Source: Macrostomum lignano (lineage: Eukaryota). Taken from it: a stretch of DNA of 64,000 bases. A program made the translations under genes and the position numbers. The stretch lies in assembly GCA_002269645.1 (NCBI GenBank), contig NIVC01000978.1, positions 310,001 to 374,000 on the forward strand, read 5' to 3'. Every line of letters begins with the position of its first letter. The stretch's first letter is position 1. Of the stretch, positions 3,886 through 20,763 are shown in pieces. Below the pieces are notes generated by a model. It had not been told where the DNA came from and did no database searches. It saw only the letters and a program-made list of their open reading frames with translations.

Positions 3886-4025
3886 AAGTGTCGGTCCTTT
3901 AGAGTGGCCTCATAGTTTTTATGTAAAAAAGCTGGATTAGGCATTGAATCTCACAGAGCTTCCATTGCAACATTCGCTTCGAAAAAAACTTCTTTCATGC
4001 AGAAATTAACTGACAGCTACTTAGC

Positions 4026-5575
4026 ATGGCATTCTGGAAGAAGCCAACAGTGCAGGAACAGATGCGGGCCAACGATCGGGAGCTGAAGAAGACCCAGCGA
4101 GATCTGGAACGCGACCGGGGCCATCTGGAGCGCGAGGAGAAACGCATCGAAGGAGAGATTAAAAAAGCAGCAAAGCAGGGCAACAAGGAGGCCTGCTCGG
4201 TGCTGGCGAAACAGCTGGTCCGCCTGCGGCAGCAGAAGACCCGCAGCTATGCTATGGGCAGCAAAGTGTCCGCTGTTGGCACTCAACAGAAAGTGATGGG
4301 CGCCAATTTGAAAATGGCCGACGCTATGAAGACCACGACAAAGACTATGGGCCAGATGAATAAAGCGATGTCGCCGGAGGACACCATGAAAACTATGCGT
4401 CAGTTTCAGGAGTCCAACATGAAGATGGAGATGTCCGAGGAGACTATGAACGAAGCTTTGGACGACATTTTTGCCGGCTCGGATGATGAAGCTGAGCAGG
4501 ATAAGGTGAGAGGCTGGACTGTGATCCACAGTGATCCCATAGGATTATTAGCAATAGTTTCATGTTTATCCTATTAGATTTCATATTTATCCCAATTGAA
4601 AGTCCATATTTATACCTATTCAAAATTCATATTTATCCCGATTTGGAATCCATATTTATCCTTATTCAGTGAAGAGTTTATATGATGGGTGGTGATGAGT
4701 CACTCAATAACTCCCTACGTCCGAAACGTAACGGATAACTCAATTCAAATCAATAATCCTCTAGGAATGTATCCTAGGAAACAAGGAGGCCTTTCTCAAG
4801 TGTGTCGACAATAAGTGGCTCTCGTAAACTCAATTAATCAACTTAATTATTAGCGCTAGTAACAAATAACTAAATCGGGTAAACGCTTACGAATCGGTCC
4901 GGATTTCTTCTCTCAGAGATGGGTCTTCTCAGTATTCCAAGATATTCCTTAAGACCGCTCCGAGTCTGAAGGGGTCATGCATGTTTGATCATTTCCATAT
5001 ATGGAATTAAGCAAATACAACTCCCGAGAACCGGTTCCTTGATCAAATAAACGTCGGTCCTACGTAGGGCTCTGAGTCACTTCTGTTTGCACGTGACTCA
5101 TTCTAAAAATAGAATTTATAAAAATAGATATGACTCATAATGACTCATTCTAAAAATAGAATTTATAAAAATAGATATGACTCATAATGACTCATTCTAA
5201 AAATAGAATTTATAAAAATAGATATGACTCATCATTACTCTTTCTAAAAATAGATTGCGAGTTTAAATTAATTTTATTAGAATATTATATCAGGTAGTGC
5301 GTTCTGATATGATTTACAGTTCTCTACATCAGAATCCATATTTATCCCACTCAAAATCGAGTTCCCAATCATATTGCACATGACTCCCACACCCATCAAC
5401 CAACTCCCGCCAGGTAGTGGCCCAAGTCCTAGATGAAATCGGCATCGACATGAATGCTCAGATGTCCAAGGCGCCGTCTACGTCGACAGCAACGCCAAGG
5501 GCAGCCGCAGCCTCATCTAGCAAAGACGATGACGAAGAGATGCTGAAAAGGCTAGCCGGACTCTCCGCACCTTGA
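4026..5575 (+). CDS. CHMP2B: ESCRT-III subunit CHMP2B; exons 4026-4505, 5414-5575
   Basis: GNKEACSVLAKQLV, KMEMSEETMNEALDDIFAGSDDE|VVAQVLDEIGI match CHMP2B; phase-0 GTGAG...CCAG intron; AATAAA near 5730. Confidence 0.93.
5094..5250. repeat. 47-bp tandem repeat, ~3 copies, in the CHMP2B intron
   Basis: TGACTCATTCTAAAAATAG at 5094, 5141 and 5188. Confidence 0.9.
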
Positions 5576-6180
5576 GAACAGTGTTTTTGCTCGATTGACT
5601 CAGGTCTAGAAGCAAAGGCTGCCTTTTCAAATCAATATTTTGTATAAATTTAAATAGCAATTTACCTTTTGTCTGTTATAAGTAGTATTGAGCATAAATC
5701 CGCGCGATTTTCGGTCGGAAAGAATTCTAAATAAAAGCAGCCTTTGCGCCGTTTTCTAACCAAAACACATAACTGCTCGCAACCTGCTGATGGTGGTGTA
5801 GAATATTTAATAAAATCTGTGATTTCATGTTTCACTATCATTTATTCTCACTCAGTAAGCGGGTGTCTGAGTCCAATTAAACTAAATCTATCCGGATGTG
5901 AATGTGACATACTTCTGCTATTTGCTGTCTAAAGTGAATGGTTCAAATTTCAAGTGAGTCCCTGTCTTGTGTTTGTAGCAAAATATTTATTCTGTTCAAT
6001 ATTTACTTACTCTGTTTGCCACTGCTTTTTCAATAATAATTTTGCCCCATCATTTTATTCAGACTAAAATAAGTGCATTGCTTTAAGAGATCAGTTTTAT
6101 AAAAATTATCGTACAGTTTTATTAACTTCTTTCTATTTTAAATCAGGTTTATAACGTGTACTCGATTGAAAAAGTTTGAT

Positions 6181-8075
6181 AGATTAGCAATATATTCTAT
6201 TCCTTCAGTGATGTTGGCTAGATTAGCAATCCATTCTATTCCTTAATTGATGTTGGCTAGATTAGCAATCCATTCTATCCCTTCATTGATGTTGGCTAGA
6301 TTAGCAATCCATTCTATTCCTTCATTGATGTTGGCTAGATTAGCAATCCATTCTATTCCTTCAGTGATGTTGGCTAGATTAGCAATCCATTCTGTTCCTT
6401 CATTGATGTTGGCTAGATAAGAAATCCATTCTATTCCTTCAGTGATGTTGGCTAGATAAGAAATCCATTCTATTCCTTCATTGATGTTGGCTAAATTAGC
6501 AATCCATTCTATTCCTTCAGGGATGTTGGCTAGATAAGAAATCCATTCTATTCCTTCATTGATGTTGGCTAAATTAGCAATCCATTCTATTCCTTCATTG
6601 ATGTTGGCTAGATTAGCAATCCATTCTATTCCTTCATTGATGTTGGCTAAATTAGCAATCCATTCTATTCCTTCATTGATGTTGGCTAAATTAGCAATCC
6701 ATTCTATTCCTTCATTGATGTTGGCTAGATAAGAAATCCATTCTATTCCTTCATTGATGTTGGCTAAATTAGCAATCCATTCTATTCCTTCAGGGATGTT
6801 GGCTAGATTAGCAATCCATTCTATTCCTTCATTGATGTTGGCTAAATTAGCAATCCATTCTATTCCTTCATTGATGTTGGCTAGATAAGAAATCCATTCT
6901 ATTCCTTCATTGATGTTGGCTAAATTAGCAATCCATTCTATTCCTTCAGGGATGTTGGCTAGATTAGCAATCCATTCTATTCCTTCATTGATGTAGGCTA
7001 GATAAGCAATCCATTCTATTCCTTCAGGGATGTTGGCTAGATTAGCAATCCATTCTATTCCTTTAGTGATGTTGGCTAGATTAGCAATCCATTCTATTCC
7101 TTCAGGGATGTTGGCTAGATTAGCAATCCATTCTATTCCTTCAGTGATGTTGGCTAGATAAGCAATCCATTCTATTCCTTCAGTAATGTAGGCTAGATTT
7201 GCAATCCATTCTATTCATTCAGTGATGTTGGCTAGATTAGCAATCCATTCTATTCCTTCAGGGATGTTGGCTAGATTAGCAATCCATTCTATTCCTTTAG
7301 TGATGTTGGCTAGATTAGCAATCCATTCTATTCCTTCAGGGATGTTGGCTAGATTAGCAATCCATTCTATTCAATCAGTGATGTTGGCTAGATTAGCAAT
7401 CCATTCTATTTCTCCATTGATGTTTGCTAGATCAGCAATTCAATCTATTCCTTAATTGATGTTGGCTAGATTAGCAATCCATTCTTAATTCCCTCAGTGA
7501 TGTTGGCTAGATTAGCAATCCATTCTATTCCTTAATTGATGTTGGCTAGATTAGCAATCCATTCTTAATTCCCTCAGTGATGTTGGCTAGATTAGCAATC
7601 CATTCTATTCCTTCATTGATGTTGGCTAGATTAGCAATCCATTCTAAATTCCTTCAGTGATGTTGGCTAGATTAGCAATCCATTCTATTCCTTCATTGAT
7701 GTTGGCTAGATTAGCAATCCATTCTATTCCTTTAGTGATGTTGGCTAGATTAGCAATCCATTCTATTCCTTCATTGATGTTGGCTAGATTAGCAATCCAT
7801 TCTATTCCTTCATTGATGTTGGCTAGATTAGCAATCCATTCTAAATTCCTTCAGAGATGTTGGCTAGATTAGCAATCCATTCTATTCCTTCATTGATGTT
7901 GGCTAGATTAGCAATCCATTCTATTCCTTTAGTGATGTTGGCTAGATTAGCAATCCATTCTATTCCTTCATTGATGTTGGCTAGATTAGCAATCCATTCT
8001 ATTCCTCCAGTGATGTTGGCTAGATTAGCAATCCATTCTATTCCTCCATCAGTGATGGCTACATTAGCAATCCAT
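6181..8075. repeat. 39-bp minisatellite, ~48 copies, between CHMP2B and CIAO1
   Basis: Unit TGATGTTGGCTAGATTAGCAATCCATTCTATTCCTTCA(T/G); period 39 (6181, 6220). Confidence 0.97.
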
Positions 8076-8158
8076 TTTACTTCACGAATGTTACCTAGAA
8101 TTTTTTTCCTGAAAATATATTAGGAAAAAATACTTGTAACGTGGTACTCACCCCGCAG

Positions 8159-8741
8159 GCCTCAGTAGTATCATTAGCGCAGACCCTAGACGGCCACTCG
8201 GACAGGGTGTGGTGCGTCGCTTGGTCACCCGACGGCCGATTGTTGGCCACCTGCGGCGGGGATAAAACTATTCGCCTGTGGCAGTGCGAGCTGAGCACAG
8301 ATCAGAGCAACAACAGGCGCTTGAGTCACTGCGACACCCTGAGTGGCGAGCACCACCGAACTATTCGATCTGTCGCCTTCTCGCCCTGCAGTAGACGATT
8401 GGCCTGCGGCAGCTTCGATGCAACTATTACAGTTTATAGCAGGCAGGACGGCGAGGTTGGGAGTCGATTCGAATCCGTGGCCAAGCTGGAGGGTCACGAG
8501 AACGAGGTCAAGGACGTGGCCTGGTCCCCGTCGGGTCACTATCTGGCCACGTGCGGACGGGACAAGAGTCTGTGGGTGTGGGAAAGTGAGTTTTCTCGCC
8601 TGCGTTCGTGTTGCTTCAATGAATTTTTCGCTACATATCGGCTGGCTAGTCTATTGGTTGAGAATGATTGGATTGATTGAGACAGACAGGCAGACAGACA
8701 GACAGACAGACAGACAGACAGGCAGACAGACAGACAGACAA

Positions 8742-8772
<31 letters not shown>

Positions 8773-9437
8773 TGCAGACAGGCAGGCAGACAGACAGACA
8801 AACAAACAGACAGACAGACAGACAGACAGGCATTAGGACAGACAGGCAGACAGACAGACAGACAGACAGACAGACAGGCAGACAGACAGACAAACAAACA
8901 GACGCGCATTTGCCCTATCGAATGTACTTATCAGATTATTTATTAGCTAAGCTAATCTTTTCAAATTTTTGCAGTGGACGACGACTCGGACTTTCAGTGC
9001 CTGAGCGTCACTCAGCCGCACAGTCAGGACATCAAATGCGTGGTCTGGCATCCACAGTCCGAGGTGAGCATCTGCTTTTTCTGTTTTAGTGTCTGTCTGT
9101 CTCTGTGTCTGTCTGCCTGTCTGTCTGTCTGCCTGCCTGTCTGTCTGTCTGTCTATCTGTCTTAGTTTGTTTGTCTGTCTGTCTGTCTGTCTGTCTATCT
9201 GTCTGTCTGTCTGTCTGCCTGCCTGTCTGTCTGTCTGTCTATCTGTCTTAGTTTGTTTGTCTGTCTGTCTGTCTGTCTGTCTATCTGTCTTAGTTTGTTT
9301 GTCTGTCTGTCTATCTGTCTGTCTGTCTGTCTGCCTGCCTGTCTGTCTGCCTGTCTGTCTGCCTGCCTGCCTGTCTGTCTGTCTGTCTGTCTGCCTGTCT
9401 GTCTATCTGTCTTAGTTTGTCTGTCTGTCTTAGTGTA

Positions 9438-9506
<69 letters not shown>

Positions 9507-11259
9507 CACCTGTCCGCCCCTTTACCGCCAGATCCTGGCCACGGCCAGCTACGATGACACGCTGAAGCTACACCGAGAGGACGGCGACGACTGGTGCAGC
9601 TTCGCCACCCTGTCCGGCCACGAGTCCACGGTGTGGCGGGCGGCCTTCAGCCCGGACGGCAAGCGGCTGGCTTCGTGTAGCGCAGATCGAACTCTGCGCG
9701 TCTGGTCAGCGGCTGGCGCGCCTATGGATGGTCCGACAACCTGGCGGTGCGAGGCAACGCTGACGGGCGGACACGAGCTGCCGATTTTCTCTTGCAGCTG
9801 GTGGGTTCCAGCTACTTTTAGTTTATGGTTATTTCCTGGAAAGAATACTGAATTGGTATCTGTCTGTTCATTCTGTGGGTATCTTTTCTTACGCTGGATA
9901 TCTAGCGTCTATAGGTCTCTGGTCTCTCTGCAGATTTCTACTCTCTTTGCAGGTATCTATTCTCTATGCAAGTGTCTACTGTCTAGCCTCTCCTCGGCTG
10001 TCTACTCCATATCTACAGTTATCTACTCTCTATCTACAGTTATCTACTCCCTATCTACAGTTATCTACTCTCTATCTACAGTTATCTACTCCCTATCTAC
10101 AGTTATCTACTCTCTATCTACAGTTATCTACTCCCTATCTACAGTTATCTACTCTCTATCTACAGTTATCTACTCCCTATCTACAGTTATCTGCTCTCTA
10201 TCTGCAGTTATCTACTCCCTATCTACAGTTATCTACTCTCCATCTACAGTTATCTACTCTCCATCTACAGTTATCTACTCTCCATCTACAGTTATCTACT
10301 TCCTATCTACAGTTATCTACTTCCTATCTACAGTTATCTACTCCCTATCTACAGTTACCTACTCCCTATCTACAGTTATCTACTCTCTATCTACAGTTAT
10401 CTACTCTCCATCTACAGTTATCTACTCTCCATCTACAGTTATCTACTCTCCATCTACAGTTATCTACTTCCTATCTACGGTTATCTACTCTCTATCTACA
10501 GTTATCTACTCCCTATCTACAGTTATCTACTCTCTATCTACAGTTATCTACTCTTTATCTACAGTTATCTACTCCCTATCTACAGTTATCTACTCTCCAT
10601 CTACAGTTATCTACTCTCCATCTACAGTTATCTACTTCCTATCTACAGTTATCTACTCTCCATCTACAGTTATCTACTCTCTATCTACAGTTATCTACTC
10701 TCTATCTACAGTTATCTACTCTCTATCTACAGTTATCTACTCTCTATCTACAGCTATCTACTCTCTATCTACAGTTATCTACTTCCTAGATCTACAGTTA
10801 TCTCCTCTCTATCTACAGTTATCTACTCCCTATCTACAGTTATCTACTCTCTATCTACAGTTATCTACTCCCTATCTACAGTTATCTACTTCCTAGATCT
10901 ACAGTTATCTCCTCTCTATCTACAGTTATCTACTCCCTATCTACAGTTATCTACTCTCTATCTGCAGTTATCTACTCCCTATCTACAGCTATCTCTGCAG
11001 CAACAAACACACTGCTCATTCTCATGCCCCAATCCGCAGGCACCCGTCGCGGGACTGGCTCTTGTCAGCTTCCCAGGACAACTCCATCTGCCTGTGGACA
11101 GCCAACACCGACTCCGGCTGCTGGGATCTCGTCGAACGAGTCGCCGACGCGCACTGCGAAGATGTCAACGATGTGAAATGGCATCCAACAATTGACAACC
11201 TGTTTGTCAGTGTTGGCGACGACTGCCTGGTCAAAGCGTGGACTGTTGACTTTCGCTGA
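8159..11259 (+). CDS. CIAO1: Cytosolic Fe-S assembly WD40 protein CIAO1; exons 8159-8585, 8975-9063, 9532-9800, 11040-11259; initiator ATG not found at the locus
   Basis: [63 protein letters not shown]. Junction phases 1/0/2 are consistent; 1005 nt give 334 aa plus stop. Confidence 0.93.
8680..8901. repeat. (GACA)n microsatellite in CIAO1 intron 1
   Basis: Directly visible. Confidence 0.97.
9090..9506. repeat. (TGTC)n microsatellite in CIAO1 intron 2
   Basis: Directly visible; reverse complement of the intron-1 repeat. Confidence 0.97.
10005..11000. repeat. 21-bp minisatellite (TCTACAGTTATCTACTCYCTA) in CIAO1 intron 3
   Basis: 7-aa periodic spurious ORFs (STVIYSL / YLQLSTL). Confidence 0.96.
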
Positions 11260-11811
11260 TCGCTTCTATGGCGTAGTATTGTTTAATCGTAGTTCCGAGG
11301 TTAGATTAGCAATCCACTATTAGTACCGAGCTATCAAGCATATAGCAACTCGACCTGTTTGAAATGCCTTCTCGATTTGTTGCATAAATTTGCATTCAAT
11401 TTAATTATGATTTGCAAATTTTTAATAAATATATTTTAGCATTGTATTTTGCCAGAATACTACTTGTAGCGTGTCTAAGCGTTTATTTTACAACCAAACT
11501 ATAGTCAGAGGTCGCGAGTTCGATGGTGTCCCTTGATATCTGAATTTGAAATGTATTAGTTGAAATGTATTAGATACATTAGAAATATATTAGTAAAATG
11601 CGATGGGAGACTAATTCAGGGGAGGTCTAGAGAGTCCAGAGTTCGATTCCTAAAGTTGCGTAGTTTCAATATCCGACCAAATACCGTAGCAACTACAATA
11701 GAACTTGATTTTGTACAAAATTGATGCGTTCCCTATAACCTCCTATTCGGTGATTAATATAAAAGTGCAAACCGAAAGTTTCCGAAGACAGACAGACAGA
11801 GGCAACAGAAC

Positions 11812-15274: not shown

Positions 15275-16471
15275 CCAGCCAGCCCATACGGAGCTAATTC
15301 TAGCGCAACATGATGGCAAAAATCGTGCTATAGATACTTATCAACAGGCCTGCAGCTTCAACTCGAGAACCCTACGTTGCTCGCAGTCCGACGGCGAAAA
15401 GGTGATGATGTCGAAAGCTACATGTACATTTACAGCCGCCGTCGCACCAACCCAGGTGTGCGCGAGACCAACTCCTCAAATAACCCACCCGCAAGCGTCA
15501 TCAGAATCACCAGGTGTTCTGAAGTCTGTTGTCTTAAAATTCAATTTTAATTCTAGTTATTAGACTTGTTTTCTCTATGTTGATATGCTTACTGTGGAAC
15601 GTTATGTGCATTTATACATGTAAATCATCAGCATCTACCGAGTGAAGGGTGCAGAGATCCATCAGCATCTACCAAATTACCCTGCAGGGCTGGGTTTCGA
15701 AACTTCAAAGAAAATGTGAAGAACTTTTCTGCACAGAATGCATGCACTAGCAGGGTAAAATATAGAGCTGAAACTGAAATTCGGTGGGTGTTACAATTTT
15801 GAGCAGTTTTGGGCGGCCCCTGCAGCAGCTGCATCTTGTGTAGCTCTCAGCATCATTTGTAGCCCTTGGCACAAATAGATTGTTCTTCACGTATTTCATA
15901 TAGGAGAAACTCACAATAGACAATATAGAAAAGCTTTTGTTCATTGACTCACAAGAAATCTACCCTAGCCAATGGCTGCTTCCCACACACTCAACTGGAG
16001 TGTATGCAAAAATTTAGAAACCCTATATTTTTCTGCCTCATCATTCCTCGGTGAAAAAAAACAGACAGCAACTCAACTGTCTCGTATGGAGTTTTCCGTC
16101 CACTCGCTCGCCCCATTAAAACTGCGGCATGCAGACCAGCTGCCACTAATAAAGTTTTCCACGTTGCAACGATGCAATTTGGGCACAGAGATGAGCCGCT
16201 GGCTGCAGGGGGGGGGGGGCACCGCACCAGCTCACACCGTGCCAACTCTGCGTTCACTGCACACAATAGGGTCAATGTACAGTCAGAGAGAAACATGAGA
16301 AAGGGTGGATAGAAGGACAGCGAAAACAACTCCTTCGCCTTCACACAGTTGCACGAACGATTTTATTTAAGTAAGCCCCCACCGCTCCAGAGCGCAATAA
16401 GCTCCCCCCTGACTCTGTGCCTTCACTTGCAGCCACAGCTCAGACTTCTTACAGTGCAACTCCCATCAGCC

Positions 16472-16810
16472 ATGCAGCTGCTGCTTATCTCGCTGTTGCT
16501 GCCGTCCTTGGCGGCTGCCCAGAGCACCATGGAAACCACCACCAAGCCGATGGAGGCTACAACCACGCCGAATATCGGTGGCTTCACCAGCGACCAGCTG
16601 GGCGTGCTCATCGGGATCCCAGTTGCCCTGGTTATCATCATCATCATCGGTGTAATAATCGGCTGCGTGGTGCAGCACAAGGTGCACCAGGAGGACAAGC
16701 TGCTGGAGGGCAAGCCCTACCAGGATCAGGGAGACGTTGGGACCGGCGGCAGCCAGGCCATGGGCCGCAGCCCGTACTACAACGACTATCTGAGCCAGAC
16801 GAAGAACTAA
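16472..16810 (+). CDS. Orphan 112-aa type I membrane protein (signal peptide, Thr-rich stalk, one TM helix, Tyr-containing tail)
   Basis: MQLLLISLLLPSLAAAQ signal; ETTTKPMEATTT; LGVLIGIPVALVIIIIIGVIIGCVV TM; GC3-rich codons; acceptor TTCTTACAG just upstream; AATAAA near 16992. Confidence 0.75.
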   Translation: MQLLLISLLLPSLAAAQSTMETTTKPMEATTTPNIGGFTSDQLGVLIGIPVALVIIIIIGVIIGCVVQHKVHQEDKLLEGKPYQDQGDVGTGGSQAMGRSPYYNDYLSQTKN

Positions 16811-17365: not shown

Positions 17366-20300
17366 TTAGGTCTCGGCGGCCAAGTAGCGGCGCAGCTCGG
17401 CATCCTCCTGATCGCGGACAAACTTATCAAACGCCTGCAAGCGTTGATGACGCTGCGGGTCGCTTTGAGTCTCATCATCATCATCAGCCTCCTCAGCTGC
17501 CAGCGCCGCCAGGCCGCTCTGCAATACAGAACAGAAAATATCTGCCTTATTGATGACTAATCGTCATTAAGATTTAAGATTAATCAACTGAGCTCCTCAC
17601 CTGCATGGTTGCATAATTTCTCTGGTAATTAAACACCGCCCACATCAGGTGCCAAACGGAGAAGTCCGGCCACATTGCGTTAACAAAGTGCACGCAGGTG
17701 AACTGGGTCTGCAATTGGATTAACGAAATTGAACTTGAAATTGAGCAGAGCCAGCTCAAAGTCTGAGGTAAACGTGACCCCTGGTTAGATTCCTGGTTCG
17801 GCTTGTATGTGCACGGTCGCCGAAGGCGTTGCGCTGGGTGCCTACAGGTCTTCTACGTAGTTATTTTGCTGTTATCTAAAATTGAGTACTAATGCCGATA
17901 TGTATCGAAAAAAACAATATACACTGAGCATTGTTTCCGAATATGAGAAGTTTGAAGCAGCCATCTTCATTTCATTGACTCCATAGCATACACAAGGGCA
18001 CAAGGCAAACACTCACACAGCAGTGTATACTGTTTAGCAGCCCTGGAATTATTTATCATCAGATATCTACAATGTACTACTACTAGTAAAAATGCTAGTT
18101 CTTTTTATAAATTAACCAGCAGCCATACCTGCCACAGGAGAAAGTCAGACAGTCTGGTTTCGCCAGAGGTTCGTATCAACAGGTCGGGCGGCCCCGGGGA
18201 CAGGTAGGTGCGAGCGCACCGGTCTAGCAGGCGCGGCGTGACGTCATCTGGGAGCAGGAGGCCGGACCGGACAGCCTGGCCTGCCAAGGACACCGCGTGG
18301 GCCATGTCGTCGCGCGAGGTGTACGCGAAGCACACGTTTAGGCGGGCCTTGCTGTGCGAGCTGAGGGCGGCGAGGTGCGGATACGGGGAGGTGATAGCAG
18401 TATTGTTGATGAGTGCCGACTTCTAATTCTGCGCTGAAGTAAACATTGCAGACCTGATTCGTTTGAATTTATCCACTCTATGTGTCATTCTTGAACTGTT
18501 TCAACTGAAGAAACACACAATCTCCCAACCCACAACTTCCCAACCCAGAATGACCACCAACCCACAACCTCCCAAACCAAGATCACCAAACCCAGAATAT
18601 CCTAACTCAATCTCCCAAACGACAAACTTCCAACTCAGAATGACCCCAAGCCACAATCTCCCAACCCAGAGTGACCCCAAGCTACAATCTCTCAACCCAG
18701 AGTGACCCCCAGCTACAATCTCCCAACCCAGAGTGACCCCAAGCTACAATCCCCCAACCCAGAGTGACCCCAAGCCACAATCTCCCAACCCAGAGTGACC
18801 CCAACCCACAATCTCCCAACCCAGAATGACCCCAAGCTACAATCTCCCAACCCAGAATGACCCCAACCCACAATCTCCCAACCCAGAGTGACCCCAAGCT
18901 ACAATCTCCCAACCCAGAGGGACCCCAAGCTACAATCTCCCAACCCAGAATGACCCCAACCCATAATCTCCCAACCCAGAATGACCCCAAGCCACAATCT
19001 CCCAACCCAGAATGACCCCAAGCTACAATCTCCCAACCCAGAGTGACCCCAAGCCACAATCTCCCAACCCAGAGTGACCCTAAGCCACAATCTCCCAACC
19101 CAGAGTGACCCTAAGCCCAATCTCCCAACCCAGAGTGACCCCAAGCCACAATCTCCCAACCCAGAGTGACCCCAAGCCACAATCTCCCAACCCAGAGTGA
19201 CCCTAAGCCACAATCTCCTTACCCAGAAGGACCCCAAGCCACAATCTCCTAACCCAGAGTGACCCCAAGCCACAATCTCCCAACCCAGAGTGACCCCAAG
19301 CTACAATCTCCTAACCCAGAGTGACCCCAAGCTACAATCTCCCAACCCAGAATGACCCCAAGCTACAATCTCCCAACCCAGAGTGACCCCAAGTCACAAT
19401 CTCTTAACCCAGAGAGTGACCCCAAGCTACAATCTCCCAACCCAGAATGACCCCAAGCTACAATCTCCCAACCCAGAATGACCCTAAGCCACAATCTCCT
19501 AACCCAGAAGGACCCCAAGCCACAATCTCCTAACCCAGAGTGACCCCAAGCCACAATCTCCCAACCCAGAGTGACCCCAAGCTACAATCTCTCAACCCAG
19601 AGTGACCCCAAGCTACAATCTCCCAACCCAGAATGACCCCAAGCTACAATCTCCCAACCCAGAGTGACCCCAAGCCACAATCTCCCACCCAGAGTGACCC
19701 CAACCCACAATCTCCCAACCCAGAGTGACCCCAAGCTACAACCTCCCAACCCAGAATGACCCCAAGCTACAATCTCCCAACCCAGAATGACCCCAAGCTA
19801 CAATCTCCCAACCCAGTATGACCCCAAGCTACAATCTCCCAACCTAGAATGACCCCAAGCTACAATCTCCCAACCCAGAATGACCCTAAGCCACAATCTC
19901 CTAACCCAGAAGGACCCCAAGCCACAATCTCCTAACCCAGAGTGACCCCAAGCCACAATCTCCCAACCCAGAGTGACCCCAAGCTACAATCTCCTAACCC
20001 AGAGTGACCCCAAGCTACAATCTCCCAACCCAGAATGACCCCAAGCTGCAATCTCTCAACCCAGAGTGACCCCAAGCTACAATCTCTCAACCCAGAATGA
20101 CCCCAAGCTACAATCTCCCAACCCAGAGTGACCCCAAGCCACAATCTCCCAACCCAGAGTGACCCCAAGCCACAATCTCCCAACCCAGAATGACCCCAAG
20201 CCACAATCTCCCAAACCAGAATGACGCCAGGCCGCAGACCTGGTGGCCTGCATGACCCTGGCTGCAGCGGCCCTCAGATCGGCAGGCAGCAGTTGCAGAT

Positions 20301-20763
20301 TGCCCAGCACCCGGACGCAGACCCCGTAGGCCCGGAGCCGGTCTAACTCCTGCAATAGTCGGTCGAATTTCTGCCTGGCCAGCTGCAAGAGGCCGGCCAC
20401 CTCCTCGGCGCTCCTGTTGAAATTCTCGATGCTAAAAGCGTAGACGGTCACTTCGTTAATGCCCAGGTCGCGGCACCATTCCAGCACTTCGCCAACTTTT
20501 TGAAAGCCGCGCAGATGGCCCTGCGATTTCTGCAGGCCGTGACATCTGGCGAATCGCCTATTGCCGTCCATGATAATGGCCAGGTGGTTCGGCAGGGGTC
20601 CCTGACCCAGCATGGTCATGGACAGGCGCTGCATAGCTGTGTACTGCGCCCCAGTGCGAATCCATTCGTCCTCAGGGATGGCTGCGGAGTCTTGGCTGGT
20701 GTCCTTGGGCGGCTCCGCTGGCACAGGAGAGGGGCCGGCAGTGGGCAATGGTTGGGATTGCAT
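17366..20763 (-). CDS. DHDDS: Dehydrodolichyl diphosphate synthase (cis-prenyltransferase); exons 20763-20240, 18360-18129, 17708-17601, 17518-17366
   Basis: PNHLAIIMDGNRRFAR, VYAFSIENFNRS, LNVCFAYTSR, PDLLIRTSGETRLSDFLLWQ, MWPDFSVW; junction phases 2/0/0. The exact N-terminus is uncertain. Confidence 0.92.
18520..20226. repeat. 31-bp minisatellite, ~55 copies, in DHDDS intron 1 (G-rich on the sense strand)
   Basis: GTGACC at 18671 and 18702; unit AGTGACCCCAAGCTACAATCTCCCAACCCAG. Confidence 0.96.

Follow-up and report, generated by a model that had tools for sequence, protein, structure and literature searches.

Where does translation of a conserved gene begin when its first coding exon carries no ATG? 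The question is raised by a locus of the flatworm Macrostomum lignano, located within a stretch of 64,000 nucleotides that was analyzed as a whole (contig NIVC01000978.1, forward strand, positions 310,001 to 374,000; hereafter the window, to which all coordinates refer unless stated otherwise). Judged from its sequence, the product of the locus is clearly CIAO1/Cia1, a predicted full-length protein of seven WD40 blades. CIAO1/Cia1 is the WD40 subunit of the cytosolic iron-sulfur assembly targeting complex, and by analogy with other organisms the gene may be regarded as essential in M. lignano. Here, we argue from the gene model, the register of the protein against its orthologs, the divergence between paralogous copies and the annotation records that the start codon of CIAO1 is very probably donated by the trans-spliced leader (SL), with use of the acceptor and initiation at the leader AUG both predicted.

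Results

A complete CIAO1 reading frame without a genomic start codon

CIAO1 is modeled on the plus strand as four exons, at 8159..8585 (427 nt), 8975..9063 (89 nt), 9532..9800 (269 nt) and 11040..11259, the last of which includes the TGA stop and ends where the NCBI coding sequence also ends. Together the exons comprise 1005 nt, or 334 codons plus the stop, every intron is bounded by GT..AG, and AATAAA at 11424..11429 (+) is the probable poly(A) signal. By exact look-up, the protein translated from the assembled exons is, minus its first residue, PAA74076.1 (BOX15_Mlig004576g2, labeled 'partial'), which is placed on contig NIVC01000978.1 of assembly GCA_002269645.1 (Mlig_3_7), position 8162 of the window being 318162 of the record. 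The closest database match of the assembled protein is BOX15_Mlig014354g2, a 'hypothetical protein, partial' of M. lignano, at 99% identity, and the remaining strong named matches are all CIAO1. Aligned with 30 named metazoan orthologs, the protein is 44-50% identical over its full length, and the resulting 31-sequence alignment contains 56 invariant columns. Structure matches comprise 3fm0 (E = 1.9e-84 over query residues 12-331), 6tbl and 9uky (both over query 7-332) and 2hes (over query 5-333). The M. lignano protein is collinear with CIAO1/Cia1 of known structure (3fm0, 6tbl, 2hes) from residue 4-12 to the C-terminus, and differs from it only in the apparent origin of the start codon and in a small insertion after blade 1. 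The best match outside Macrostomum (P0002) lies on a contig from an unrelated sample.

Upstream, the CIAO1 frame is closed by an in-frame TAG at 8096..8098 (+), and no ATG occurs from there to 8159. The open reading frame that a mechanical search returns, 8141..8680, begins with GTG, as the initial annotation had pointed out for its start at 8141. Within this open reading frame, at 8145..8158 (+), lies a 3′ splice acceptor region, TACTCACCCCGCAG, with its AG at 8157-8158, which we take as the putative SL trans-splice acceptor. Directly behind it exon 1 begins with GCC TCA GTA (A S V), in phase 0 to the leader AUG, and the same frame reads through all four exons, in agreement with the phase that had been assigned to the acceptor beforehand. 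The earliest in-frame ATG is codon 143, which is split as A/TG across 8585/8975-8976; the earlier statement that no methionine occurs before exon 2 is essentially right, with the codon straddling the junction of exons 1 and 2. Initiation at codon 143 would cost about three of the seven WD40 blades.

One detail of the initial annotation has to be revised, without consequence for the finding itself. In the branch point proposed there, TACTCAC, the A and the AG are only 8 nt apart, while the three cis acceptors of CIAO1 have CTNAY-like motifs about 17-25 nt upstream. TTGTAAC at 8134-8140, with its A about 19-20 nt upstream, appears the likelier branch site.

An N-terminus of ortholog length

A single added methionine had been predicted to give a protein of 335 residues with an N-terminus as long as that of its orthologs, and the alignments bear this out. 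In M+ASVV..., 13 residues precede the invariant histidine of the first WD repeat, which is both the median and the mode among the orthologs (10-14 residues in 27 of the 30 metazoan CIAO1 proteins). The register against the structures is equally close: query 12-331 falls on residues 12-332 of human CIAO1 (3fm0), query 7-332 on residues 7-334 of 9uky_B, and query 5-333 on residues 4-327 of yeast Cia1 (2hes). Length and register together leave neither room nor need for a further coding exon.

This bears on the explanation that the gene is conventional and its annotation incomplete, an unrecognized cis-spliced upstream exon providing a phase-0 ATG to the acceptor at 8158. The acceptor by itself cannot separate cis- from trans-splicing, and 35 phase-0 ATG...GT combinations are present in 5576-8158, the range that was searched; an exon farther upstream, or one shared with the neighboring gene CHMP2B, would lie outside it. 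However, a GT[AG]AG donor is found in 0 of the 35 combinations, most of which are satellite copies reading TCA/GTGATG, and the exact ortholog length is already reached with one methionine. Both candidate exons named in the initial annotation fall away on comparison with the paralogous copies described below: in both paralogs a 3-nt deletion takes out the ATG/GTGGTG at 5790, and ATG/GTTCAA at 5938 has a poor donor, next to a GTGAGT that stands in the wrong phase and is ATGAGT in the paralogs. Furthermore, the RNA-seq-guided annotation shows no upstream exon in any of the three copies. We consider a missed cis-spliced exon unlikely, and favor a start codon from the leader.

Coding constraint begins at the acceptor

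The genome contains two more copies of CIAO1, L001 (NIVC01000906.1) and L002 (NIVC01000440.1), both of which encode a near-identical protein (P0001). In both, the TACTCACCCCGCAG acceptor is identical and stands in the same phase, and both are likewise without an ATG. Among the three copies the coding sequence differs at 6 of 1005 sites (0.6%; three of the differences are synonymous and three are not), compared with 8 of 107 aligned positions, including a 3-nt indel, directly 5′ of the acceptor at 8055-8158 (Fisher p = 1e-5). In the open in-frame stretch alone (8099-8158) 4 of 60 sites differ (p = 0.0015), and three of these changes would be non-synonymous in the frame. Inter-copy divergence falls about tenfold at the acceptor, the non-coding flanks of the copies being 92-97% identical overall. 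This shift indicates that coding begins at 8159, and a constraint that starts there speaks against the GTG at 8141 or any other contiguous N-terminal extension.

Could CIAO1 nevertheless be translated from a codon other than AUG in the sequence directly upstream, such as this GTG, and be trans-spliced either not at all or not constantly? The GTG is in frame and conserved in the paralogs, and near-cognate initiation is known in eukaryotes. Yet the stretch that would then be translated diverges like non-coding DNA, and within it lies a CAG acceptor of canonical, pyrimidine-rich type. Moreover, the transcript as annotated starts downstream of 8141, and efficient GUG initiation would be unusual for a housekeeping protein. 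Such a start seems very unlikely to us.

The copies also address the explanation that the locus is a decaying or truncated gene, which would be untranslated, or started at the methionine of codon 143, or lacking its ATG through an assembly error. M. lignano has many duplicated genes, and the NCBI record is flagged as partial. However, reading frames and splice sites are intact in all three copies, which were assembled separately and have the ATG-less 5′ end in common, and the constraint on them is strong, with a divergence in the coding sequence far below the roughly 3-7% of non-coding DNA. In addition, protein database searches found no ATG-bearing CIAO1 for M. lignano, and conserved blades would be missing from a protein begun at codon 143. 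Decay, truncation or misassembly is, in our judgment, extremely improbable.

A leader AUG in phase with the CIAO1 frame

The SL of M. lignano is a single leader of 35 nt, CGGTCTCTTACTGCGAAGACTCAATTTATTGCATG, which ends in ...TTGCATG and is followed by GTAAG in the SL RNA gene; about 30% of the genes are trans-spliced, conserved genes preferentially, and the enriched trans-acceptor motif is [T/C]TNCAG (PMC8629364). The premise of the initial annotation, that flatworm leaders end in AUG, holds for this published leader, and the acceptor stands in phase 0 to it. At CIAO1 the acceptor motif is partly matched, as CCGCAG shares with YTNCAG the CAG and an upstream pyrimidine. A genomic SL RNA gene is carried by an environmental contig (L008), where it reads ...TTGCATG/GTAAGA, with the AUG directly before the GU donor. 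Searches of the window for an SL RNA gene, Rfam families and tRNAs returned none.

Joined at 8159, the leader gives ...UUGCAUG/GCCUCAGUA, in which the AUG is in phase 0, the +4 position is G, and 335 codons run to the TGA without an intervening stop; the SL supplies a pyrimidine at the -3 position of the Kozak context. We propose that the 5′ part of the CIAO1 pre-mRNA, an outron consisting mostly of a 39-bp satellite, would be removed by SL trans-splicing at the acceptor ending at 8158, and that the capped leader would be joined to GCCTCAGTAGTA... at 8159. Leader nucleotides 33-35 would then serve as the initiating AUG and continue in frame into the 334 genomic codons, and the product would be a CIAO1 of 335 residues (MASVV...) translated from an mRNA with a 5′ UTR of 32 nt. 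The expected junction links the SL 3′ end, ...TTATTGCATG, to GCCTCAGTAGTA at NIVC01000978.1:318159 (window 8159), with TTATTGCATGGCCTCAGTAGTATCATTAGC as the junction string. Since CIAO1 has no usable genomic start, its expression would depend on trans-splicing. The central claim of the initial annotation, that the start AUG comes from the SL, is in this way supported by phase, length, paralog divergence, the annotations and the lack of a genomic alternative, trans-splicing itself being the predicted step. The 21-mer spanning the SL-CIAO1 junction is absent from JGI metagenome contigs, the exact 335-residue protein is absent from a collection of 15 billion proteins, and a search with the N-terminal exon yielded no Macrostomum fragments.

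The 5′ end in annotation records

All three M. lignano CIAO1 protein records lack a methionine, and the two from NCBI begin with SVV. The NCBI coding sequence is 5′-partial and begins at 8162, 3 nt past the acceptor, and the same is the case in all three copies. We attribute the 'partial' label to the gene having no genomic start codon of its own. The Mlig_3_7 annotation was made by TBONE, which cuts transcriptional units at peaks of SL reads and at poly(A) sites, followed by TransDecoder calling of open reading frames (PMC5730564). A 5′-partial frame, the TAG at 8096 and a protein starting from the serine at 8162 together confine the 5′ end of the annotated transcript to 8099-8162, close to the acceptor. 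The 'g2' suffix of the gene name reflects a transcriptional unit that was cut upstream of CIAO1.

The third record, UniRef A0A1I8GKD2 (P0122), is an older, independent model of 555 residues that starts with QASVV at the acceptor CAG and in which CIAO1 is fused to the downstream gene Yip1. It is an annotation chimera over two genes of the cluster. Its QASVV start may represent the projection onto the genome of a transcript reading frame that opens with the leader ATG.

Adjacent genes are also annotated as 5′-partial, with starts 3-6 nt past an AG, in the case of CHMP2B 3-6 nt after gacag/. A rule by which the first codon is dropped would explain a 3-nt offset of the coding sequence and fits CIAO1, CHMP2B in L002 and a gene of 161 residues, but it fails for CHMP2B in L001 (6 nt) and for a prenyltransferase gene in L002 (24 nt), and we rejected it. 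The 161-residue gene (16325-16810, +) is 5′-partial with its start 4 nt after gacag/. Its real start is probably an internal methionine at a signal peptide (MQLLLISLLLPSLAAAQS) that is followed by a transmembrane segment; an SL AUG would miss this frame and open a uORF of 18 codons. This case indicates that the 'partial' flag alone is no proof of SL-AUG use. For CIAO1, PAA74076.1, PAA75053.1 and PAA82934.1 are very probably complete save for the N-terminal M-A, and not truly partial. More generally, annotation pipelines for flatworms should add the leader ATG when calling open reading frames on trans-spliced genes, and the same applies to BUSCO-style scores.

Discussion

Use of the terminal AUG of a flatworm SL as initiator was established by Cheng et al (2006) in Schistosoma mansoni, according to later papers (PMC9851317, PMC12582326, PMC5832876), one of which gives the number of S. 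mansoni cDNAs that need the SL AUG as more than 40 (PMC9851317). For Macrostomum, Wiberg et al (2023) described the final ATG of the leader as a start codon for translation and did not trim it off the reads used for annotation (PMC10468722). CIAO1 resembles the S. mansoni class in its leader with a terminal AUG, in an acceptor at phase 0, in the lack of any genomic AUG that would give a full-length protein, and in being a conserved gene of housekeeping type. It differs in being another gene in a free-living member of the Macrostomorpha, and in that the case for it is built from the genome, the paralogs and the annotation rather than from cDNAs or reporters. With the SL trans-spliced and operonic genes known in M. 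lignano (PMC5730564, PMC8629364) CIAO1 shares the single 35-nt SL, the preference for conserved genes and the 'g2' suffix; the two papers describing them (Wudarski et al, 2017; Ustyantsev & Berezikov, 2021, respectively) did not analyze the SL AUG as a start codon, and in the M. lignano annotation such genes are simply left '5′-partial'. No paper returned by our literature search names CIAO1 or gives a list of M. lignano genes that depend on the SL AUG. What CIAO1 contributes is a new example and an annotation fix, the mechanism being already known in flatworms.

How general is the use of the leader AUG? A scan of JGI contigs for the leader returned five SL-bearing transcripts in the metatranscriptome Ga0316592 and one genomic SL RNA gene; on these environmental contigs (L004-L009; JGI Ga0316592 and Ga0302322) the Macrostomum leader is identical over at least 23-35 nt. 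In the five transcripts the SL AUG opens a uORF of 2-41 codons, and the main reading frame starts from a genomic AUG 20-110 nt downstream. The base at +4 after the SL AUG is C, C, T, C and A in these five, compared with G in CIAO1. The leader AUG is thus often skipped, or re-initiation follows it, and its proposed use in CIAO1 is deduced from the lack of an alternative and not from a general rule. Judged by eye from their N-termini, four of the transcripts appear VDAC-like, IDH-like, CNBP-like and GAPDH-like, with one more besides.

The neighborhood of CIAO1 is compatible with an operon. In M. lignano, operons have been defined by genes on the same strand at a repeat-adjusted distance below 1 kb, with the downstream gene trans-spliced (PMC8629364). 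CHMP2B (Snf7; CDS 4026-5575), CIAO1 and Yip1 are on the same strand and, as far as the genome sequence indicates, lie at repeat-adjusted spacings below 1 kb: about 2.4 kb separate the AATAAA of CHMP2B (5730..5735, +) from the CIAO1 acceptor, with 1.9 kb taken up by satellite and about 0.5 kb left without it, and the AATAAA of CIAO1 is about 0.38 kb from the ATG of Yip1. The CHMP2B gene upstream of the L001 copy is assigned to a unit of another name, Mlig010417g1.

Two neighbors show further arrangements of start codon and acceptor. At 4012-4028 (+) CHMP2B reads gacag/CTACTTAGC ATG; trans-splicing at this point, should it occur, would put the SL AUG in frame and three codons ahead of the genomic one, with MLLS-MAFWKK... 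as the product. The CHMP2B paralogs at NCBI are 5′-partial and begin with SMAFW... and LSMAFW.... In a prenyltransferase gene (PF01255; about 17366-20763, minus strand) the ATG at 20763-20761 lies directly before CAATCCCAACC... (ttcATG/CAA), and the copy of this gene in L002 (at about 22447) has a consensus acceptor, ttgCAG/CAA, at the very position of the window's ATG. Upstream of this acceptor the L002 frame is closed by a TAA at a distance of 33 nt, without an ATG in between, and the next in-frame methionine follows about 43 codons on. Were the SL AUG used there, L002 would yield MQSQPLPTAGP..., as would the window copy from its own ATG. The pair may record an instance in which a genomic start codon and one supplied by the leader have been swapped.

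With CIAO1, a class so far documented mainly in Schistosoma would gain a member that is conserved, of housekeeping type and found in a free-living flatworm of an early branch. Such a member would favor the view that the terminal AUG, invariant among flatworm leaders, has been kept since some genes depend on it. CIAO1 offers a clean and testable case, and transgenesis exists in M. lignano. One may speculate further, as a tentative idea that we think could well be wrong, that three CIAO1 copies irreversibly without a start codon act as a 'ratchet' that helps to explain why trans-splicing and the leader AUG are kept, with the prenyltransferase pair caught in interconversion, and that G at +4 might mark the leader AUGs that are used.

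Finally, the locus is rich in repeats. The 39-bp satellite, TAGATTAGCAATCCATTCTATTCCTTCATTGATGTTGGC, occupies 6180..8076 in 48 copies with 92% matches and makes up most of the space between CHMP2B and the CIAO1 acceptor, the putative outron; the paralogous copies have about 17 units. As its period is a multiple of 3, it produces long spurious reading frames (MLARLAIHSIPS...). A fragment of the unit, TTAGATTAGCAATCCA, is found again in the CIAO1 3′ UTR at 11300-11320. Intron 3 of CIAO1 is filled by a 21-bp satellite, TCTACTCTCTATCTACAGTTA (47 copies, 10001-10994), each unit of which has an acceptor-like CTACAG motif, giving dozens of decoys upstream of the real acceptor at 11039. The 89-nt exon 2 is flanked by complementary microsatellites, (AGAC)n in intron 1 (8680-8903) and (GTCT)n in intron 2 (9090-9506), with a perfect complementary stretch of 34 nt. 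Pairing between them in the pre-mRNA could loop out exon 2 and lead to its skipping or to back-splicing; the arrangement is present in all three copies, with varying lengths.
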